Positions 32,829 through 33,003 of a stretch of 64,000 nucleotides of DNA are shown piece by piece. Location: positions 5,518,001 to 5,582,000 of the forward strand of contig NC_082717.1 in NCBI RefSeq assembly GCF_030144855.1, given 5' to 3'. The notes under the pieces were generated by a model. That model did not search any database and was not told the DNA's origin. It saw only the letters and a list, made by a program, of their open reading frames with translations. Numbering within the stretch: the stretch's first letter is position 1; each line of letters starts with the position of its first letter. A program made the translations under genes and the position numbers. This DNA comes from Hypanus sabinus (Eukaryota).

Positions 32829-32871
32829 CTTGGAGATGACCGTAGATGGACTGAGTGGGATGTTGCAGAGC
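32829..32871 (-). CDS. Cytoplasmic exon 3 (second half of ITAM)
   Basis: Follows a 90-nt intron. Acceptor ccatttctgtgttctctactag, phase 0. Encodes ALQHPTQSIYGHLQ, followed by a possible donor G|gtacgt; the frame also stays open to a stop at 32626. Joined to exon 2 it gives YMAL-QHPTQSI-YGHL. Confidence 0.82.
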
Positions 32872-32961
32872 CTAGTAGAGAACACAGAAATGGTGTGAAC
32901 AGCAGCTTGACAGCTGATGCTGTGGGAAAGGTTTCAATGTTCCAGAGGTGACCTTCCTTAC

Positions 32962-33003
32962 CATGTAGGTGTTGTTCGAATCGACCTGGTGACCTCCTGA
33001 ACC
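32962..33003 (-). CDS. Cytoplasmic exon 2 (first half of ITAM)
   Basis: Acceptor ttcaattgttctgttgtag, donor ATG|gtaagg, 42 nt, phase 0-0. Encodes GSGGHQVDSNNTYM. Confidence 0.82.

Follow-up and report, generated by a model that had tools for sequence, protein, structure and literature searches.

Two mini-exons of Hypanus sabinus that very probably encode the split ITAM of an unnamed shark-and-ray receptor family

In the human genes CD3G/D, CD3E, CD247, FCER1G, TYROBP and CD79A, the ITAM is divided between exons as Yx/xL. A classical ITAM, with the consensus D/E/N-x-x-Y-x-x-L/I-x7-Y-x-x-L/I, always has its coding sequence on a pair of exons that are split inside the first YxxL unit (PMC4536121), and in CD79A the last two introns are in phase 0 in all species examined (PMC4034164). 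Two further groups of genes approach the locus described here from other directions. The NILT and NITR genes of teleosts encode one or two V-type domains, a transmembrane (TM) segment and an ITAM or ITIMs on one and the same chain; they form clustered multigene families with pseudogenes, and their Ig exons are in phase 1. In NILT genes, a phase-0 intron separates a small Cyt1 exon (44-50 nt) from Cyt2 (PMC3022915). In cartilaginous fish, UrIg and UrIg2 are non-rearranging, single-exon germline V-J genes of elasmobranchs; ITAM is mentioned 0 times in the paper that concerns them (PMC12227049).

The locus lies in a window of 64,000 nucleotides from Hypanus sabinus (contig NC_082717.1, positions 5,518,001 to 5,582,000; 'the window' refers to this whole stretch, and all positions are counted from its first letter). 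An earlier note on this DNA had reported an ITAM of the form YxxL-x7-YxxL, split by a 90-nt phase-0 intron, and its coordinates, length and phase were all found to be correct. The gene around this exon pair was modelled on the minus strand, from visual inspection and tblastn matches to ray proteins, and comprised the following features:

V1 exon, 40389-40027 (363 nt), minus strand: a germline-joined V-J Ig domain, phase 1 at both ends, with a J-like FGNGTQLNVT
V2 relic, 37159-37070 (90 nt), minus strand: about 30 codons, IPALIQSPSIQRVTEGHTVWLWCTMSKARL; tblastn covers only residues 141-170 of the ray proteins P0012, P0011 and P0010
TM exon, 36125-36006, minus strand: (K)MSRAPSYLAWIIVAVVLGDLAVTGGIFLIRRRAFRNHPS, elsewhere given as YLAWIIVAVVLGDLAVTGGIFLIRRRAFRNHPS; phase 1 at both ends
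Cytoplasmic exon 1, 35840-35767 (74 nt), minus strand: HPPTATDHQSPGADYENVSVARGVP, with a third conserved Tyr (YENV); ends in phase 0
ITAM exon A, 33003-32962 (42 nt), minus strand: GSGGHQVDSNNTYM, ending one residue beyond the first Tyr; in phase 0 on either side
A-B intron, 32961-32872 (exactly 90 nt), minus strand: GT-AG, phase 0, between Y-M and A-L
ITAM exon B, 32871-32829 (43 nt), minus strand: ALQHPTQSIYGHLQ plus G; starts in phase 0 and ends in phase 1
Last coding exon, 27961-27933, minus strand: (G)CT..., reading ADNKPLSTS and then TGA; acceptor tttttgttacag

All exon borders in this model were AG/GT and the phases were compatible throughout. The five tail exons (TM, YENV, A, B and last) were intact and formed one open frame of 102 codons. 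Exon A was preceded by the acceptor ttctgttgtag/GGT and ended in NNTYM, with the donor ATG/gtaagg; the acceptor of the A-B intron was pyrimidine-rich (tttctgtgttctctactag), and the donor of exon B was gtacgt. Joined on the minus strand, the two exons read NNT-YMAL-QHPTQSI-YGHL, in which the first Tyr is the codon TAC at 32967-32965 and the second is TAC at 32844-42. Ahead of the first Tyr, position -3 was occupied by the consensus asparagine (N-N-T-Y-M-A-L, encoded by 32976-32962 and 32871-32866), and the spacer QHPTQSI before the second unit, YGHL, had the classical length of seven residues within a range of 6-8. Both exons joined in frame behind the TM exon and the stop-transfer sequence RRRAFR, which places the motif in a cytoplasmic position. 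With ray proteins as queries, tblastn landed on exactly exons A and B (E 1e-8), and along this stretch exon A did not differ from P0012, a protein of Mobula birostris. If the A-B intron were retained, translation would run into a stop codon, which appeared as such in one tblastn row.

Alternative exon borders were considered at both ends of the pair. An inner acceptor for exon A at 32996, 7 nt into the exon, would permit a direct in-frame join from the TM exon; this was dropped once the 74-nt YENV exon had been found, and the acceptor at 33003 stands because that exon ends in phase 0. At the other end, an extension of exon B as far as a stop at 32626 and a last exon close to exon B were both rejected. 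The last exon at 27961-27933 was preferred to them, being homologous to the ray proteins and agreeing with their terminal ADNKPPS(T/R)S.

The claim that the intron occupies the classic position was borne out to the extent that an intron in phase 0 parting Y-M from A-L agrees both with the rule that the first YxxL is split (PMC4536121) and with the phase-0 introns of CD79A (PMC4034164). Since this position is the rule for classical ITAMs, it marks a classical ITAM and is in itself nothing new; a split ITAM is, on its own, an expected hallmark. CD3 gamma, delta and epsilon, CD247, FCER1G, TYROBP and CD79A/B share with the present locus the same consensus and the same split, and its phase 0 is that of the last introns of CD79A. 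In contrast to the CD3, FCER1G, TYROBP and CD79 chains, the ITAM is here carried by the ligand-binding chain itself, behind V-type domains. The earlier note had gone on to derive the motif from the same exon-pair module as these chains, and this part stood only as far as the intron is concerned: its position and phase fit, whereas similarity to CD3, FcRgamma, DAP12 or CD79 beyond the motif was not detected. A Pfam scan of the tail gave no ITAM or adaptor family, a search of solved structures with the tail gave no match at E up to 10, and none of these four chains was among the eight hits of a tail profile run over 1.84 billion representative proteins. Descent from a CD3-type exon pair is plausible, the argument for it being the position of the intron.

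A likeness to the teleost genes was also seen in organization: NILT and NITR receptors likewise combine V-type domains, a TM segment and the signalling motif on a single chain. The NILT genes are the nearest published analogue, but no NILT or NITR protein could be recognized among the tail-profile hits; moreover, NILT V domains possess CX3C-type extra cysteines, are not light-chain-like V-J domains, and have been described only in bony fish. Like the present gene, UrIg and UrIg2 belong to cartilaginous fish and encode a germline V-J domain in one exon. They differ in possessing C1-type constant domains, which are absent from the gene described here, and UrIg is secreted; they are a different kind of gene.

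It might be supposed that two unrelated non-coding stretches spell YxxL-x7-YxxL once they are joined. The bare pattern is indeed common: across all six frames of the 64-kb window it occurred seven times in contiguous form, so that the motif alone carries little weight, and possible GT...AG joins are very numerous. A splice-aware scan passed a site only if ten open codons and a Tyr-x codon pair were present with a GTRAG donor, if a pyrimidine-rich YAG acceptor lay 60-1000 nt downstream, and if the remainder of the ITAM was also encoded; a single site in the window passed, i.e., exons A and B, against a mean of 0.03 per window in simulated windows with the same nearest-neighbour composition as the real one. 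Judged from sequence comparison, the decisive argument against chance is homology. Both exons and the three tail exons that flank them were homologous to annotated proteins from six species: the TM exon was recovered by tblastn with ray proteins at E 2e-17 and 90% identity, and the 74-nt YENV exon at E 5e-8 to 9e-9. By these tblastn matches and the tail alignments the chance reading of the exon pair is refuted, and its probability is very small. The earlier view that the motif was no chance match was thus upheld, its exons lying within a conserved gene tail in which both YxxL units and the seven-residue spacer are invariant among 12 homologues, from rays to the horn shark.

These homologues were collected in two steps. 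A protein search with the V1 region returned 27 ray and shark proteins, all of them RefSeq models that are 'uncharacterized' or automatically named (e.g., 'JAM-like'), and a second search with the tail of P0012, from Mobula, added 12 further proteins. All are computed RefSeq models rather than cloned cDNAs. The A-B tail was unbroken in the models of six ray and shark species. In Mobula birostris, M. hypostoma, Hypanus sabinus (LOC132403309 and LOC132403308) and Hemitrygon akajei, it read ...NNTYMALQ(H/R)PTQSIYGHLQADNKPPS(R/T)S. The sawfish model (Pristis pectinata, ...ATYMALQQP(I/T)QSTYG(Y/H)LQGH...) and that of the horn shark (Heterodontus francisci, ...STYMALQRRDQSIYSELKGN..., ending ...YSELKGNKQTADS) both had the same ITAM with another C-terminal end. 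In an alignment of 10 sequences, Y78, L81, Y89 and L92 were invariant, as was Y55-E-N; with two further tails added, both tyrosines and both leucines were invariant in 12 of 12, and the spacer was always seven residues long. The earlier note had proposed aligning orthologous exons as a check on the two Tyr/Leu pairs; among these computed RefSeq proteins conservation of the pairs was complete. The asparagine at -3 was also kept from rays to the horn shark. The TM segment plus tail of the homologues was 84-95% identical to P0012 or between homologues, and the window tail differed from the ray homologues by only a few residues.

Annotated isoforms bear on the exon borders themselves. One (P0034) reads ...NNTYM and then diverges into other sequence at the end of exon A, a second (P0033) does so after ...YGHLQ, and a third (P0035) runs through from A to B in a different frame, without additional bases. 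That these computed RefSeq isoforms break at the same borders provides indirect support for the junctions. Taken with the conservation described above, the two mini-exons are very likely to be real ITAM-coding exons, belonging to one copy in an unnamed shark-and-ray receptor family, and their ITAM to be a classical one.

Sequence comparison of the remaining exons identifies the gene as a member of a large, unnamed family of type-I membrane receptors in sharks and rays. The V1 exon matched the Pfam V-set (E 1.6e-12) and shared 83% identity with the V domain that comes first in RefSeq proteins from rays (E 1e-70 to 1e-78); its nearest solved structures were antibody light-chain and scFv V domains (3e-16), followed by JAML (4e-12). 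Members of the family have an ectodomain of germline-joined, antibody-light-chain-like V-J domains and a signalling tail of their own inside the cell; most homologues possess two to five V-J domains in tandem, and their genes can span approximately 70 kb. The multi-V-J proteins of elasmobranchs (LOC132403309, LOC132403308 and those of Mobula and Hemitrygon, some named 'JAM-like' or 'Ig kappa light chain-like') share with the window copy the YENV motif, the ITAM and the ADNKPxSxS end. No paper was found in literature searches that describes a V-J receptor family of sharks or rays, under a name of its own, in which some receptors have ITAMs and others ITIMs.

Other elements related to the family, and mobile elements, were also present in the window. 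A V-J exon at 12972-13316 on the plus strand was approximately 96% identical to the membrane-proximal V domain of Hypanus sabinus LOC132403308, and no TM or tail exon was found behind it within the window. A V2-type exon at 6814-7182 on the minus strand, 83-88% identical to ray proteins, is probably part of the next gene. Among the homologous proteins, those of Hypanus sabinus came nearest to the TM exon and to a neighbouring V exon. Retro-element ORFs, consisting of an integrase and two reverse transcriptases, occurred amid the receptor exons at 3048-4310 (plus), 49471-50253 (plus) and 60196-61158 (minus).

Transcript evidence was sought in four small runs that were guessed to be RNA and were available as contigs only; these were matched to 32300-36300 at 88% likeness. 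Most matches were to repeats, much of 32300-35650 matching very abundant repeat contigs. Confirmation of the A-B joint (32961/32872) in reads had been suggested beforehand; no contig crossing it was among the matches listed for the four runs, and no contig of this copy was found in them. Cluster look-ups returned only RefSeq models and no transcript contigs. One contig (X3, 183 nt) lay unbroken on 32829-32908, i.e., across exon B and 37 nt of the A-B intron, and stopped fitting exactly at 32829, the donor of exon B. Beyond that donor the contig joins exon B to other downstream sequence. At 94% likeness it was attributed to a paralogue, for which it is a hint of intron retention; a protein made from such a transcript would stop short of the second half of the ITAM. 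Two further contigs (from run X9, 93% alike) were colinear with the intron sequence that surrounds the YENV and TM exons, and one of them broke exactly at the TM acceptor, 36125. In the same contig GTT (Val) stood in place of the window's GAT (Asp).

This Asp codon, at 36069-36067 on the minus strand within GDLAVTGG, sets the window copy apart. All 12 homologues have Val at the position (the horn shark has Thr nearby), and by this comparison GAT is a derived single-base change. An acidic TM residue is a feature of the ITAM adaptors CD3, DAP12 and FcRgamma, and it is matched by the window copy only, the family members having Val. As the Asp is unique, the homologues have Val and the related contig has GTT, the CD3/DAP12-like acidic TM segment is a peculiarity of this copy and not a property of the family. 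The copy departs from its relatives in its outer domains also: where the homologues have two to five V domains, it retains one intact V domain and, in place of a tandem partner, the 30-codon relic of V2. The relic has lost its original acceptor and some 270 nt of its 3' part, and is followed directly by stop codons and a tRNA-like SINE (ggtagtgtaatggttagcataacg..., approximately 36930-37070). A further difference from the multi-V-J family concerns the leader exon: five family leader peptides were scanned over the window, including 23.6 kb upstream, and none gave a convincing match.

A rival view is that the exons are intact leftovers of a dead copy, the ITAM being real for the family but idle here, where no working receptor is made. 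The reduction of V2 to 90 nt with stops and SINE-like sequence behind it, the failure to find a leader exon of either family type in the window, and the non-conservative change of Val to Asp in the middle of the TM helix all favour this. So do the lack of a contig of this copy in the four runs, the other orphan V exons and retro-element ORFs nearby, and the fact that no protein with this V1 exon was present in a collection of 5.8 billion proteins, where the best identity was 83%. Yet the reading frames of V1, the TM exon and the four tail exons are still open, their splice sites canonical and their phases in agreement, and V1 can be spliced in frame straight to the TM exon, both being in phase 1; the leader may lie outside the window, given the length that genes of this family attain, and the RNA runs were small and consisted of contigs only. 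Whether the exons belong to a dead copy is accordingly an even call. The copy is probably impaired or altered, and a pseudogene and a variant with one V domain are about equally credible descriptions of it.

For the family as a whole, signalling can be proposed by analogy with classical ITAM receptors. Clustering driven by a ligand would lead Src-family kinases to phosphorylate both tyrosines of the ITAM, and a Syk/ZAP-70 kinase would bind the doubly phosphorylated motif through its tandem SH2 domains. The third tyrosine may add to this. A phosphorylated YxN is a motif for Grb2-type SH2 domains, and the Y-E-N of the 74-nt exon (DYENV) was invariant across rays and sharks, with YENF in a PSG-like receptor of the horn shark and YVNV in a newt protein; pYENV, upstream of the ITAM, could thus recruit a Grb2-type adaptor. 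Sister proteins (P0005, P0010 and P0014) combined near-identical outer domains with long tails containing ITIM-like motifs. From these tails we infer that the family comprises paired activating and inhibitory members, in which case the receptors bearing ITIMs would oppose the activating signal.

The YxxL units might instead serve mainly some other purpose, either as YxxPhi signals for endocytosis and sorting or as an inhibitory, partly phosphorylated ITAM. YxxPhi is a general sorting motif, and YMAL and YGHL both conform to it. However, a spacer fixed at seven residues has been kept across the distance between rays and sharks, the inhibitory role is served by separate ITIM-type members of the family, and the asparagine at -3 and the split-exon layout fit the definition of a classical ITAM (PMC4536121). 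A mainly sorting or inhibitory function is accordingly considered unlikely, and an activating ITAM remains the preferred reading of the exon pair.

The tail profile extended the comparison beyond V-J receptors. Three of its eight hits were ray proteins already found by the protein search; the other five included a family member from a bamboo shark, a receptor from the horn shark and a newt protein. Two weak hits, a tandem-repeat arthropod protein and a 2559-aa fish model that matched in the TM segment only, were set aside. The horn-shark receptor (Heterodontus XP_067874551, P0038; E 1.2e-5) has a tail reading ...YENF...STYMDL-x7-YHDL, and the newt protein (Lissotriton XP_078506499, P0039; 102 aa, E 2e-4) reads ...YVNV...HTYMAL-x7-YGDL; profile-profile comparison with hhalign gave a probability of 97% for both tails. 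Both share with the present family a tail cassette consisting of the TM segment, Y-x-N-(V/F) and (S/H)TYM(A/D)L-x7-Y-x-D-L. They differ from it in the ectodomain, which comprises three PSG/CEACAM-like Ig domains in the horn-shark receptor and is almost absent from the newt protein. On the strength of these two matches the tail cassette is common to different types of receptor, which suggests that TM-YxN-ITAM is a module of several receptor types that occurs outside cartilaginous fish also.

A more far-reaching reading may be offered, although we regard it as improbable. The cassette of TM segment, YxN and split ITAM may be an ancient module, spread by exon shuffling, that already existed before sharks and tetrapods diverged. 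It would have been joined to unrelated ectodomains: to light-chain-like V-J domains in the case of rays and sharks, to PSG/CEACAM-like domains in that of the horn shark, and to next to none in the newt. The present copy, having lost V2 and gained an Asp in its TM segment, would then be a ligand-binding ITAM receptor in the course of turning into an adaptor resembling CD3 or DAP12.

What the window contributes by itself is one more, probably degenerating, copy of an elasmobranch family. The receptor family is the more interesting object, with its apparently paired members that are still 'uncharacterized' in RefSeq. Through it, the classical two-exon layout of the ITAM very probably extends to a family of cartilaginous fish that wires antibody-like V-J domains to an activating motif, and the family could inform ideas on how, early in jawed-vertebrate history, domains of antigen-receptor type came together with signalling modules.
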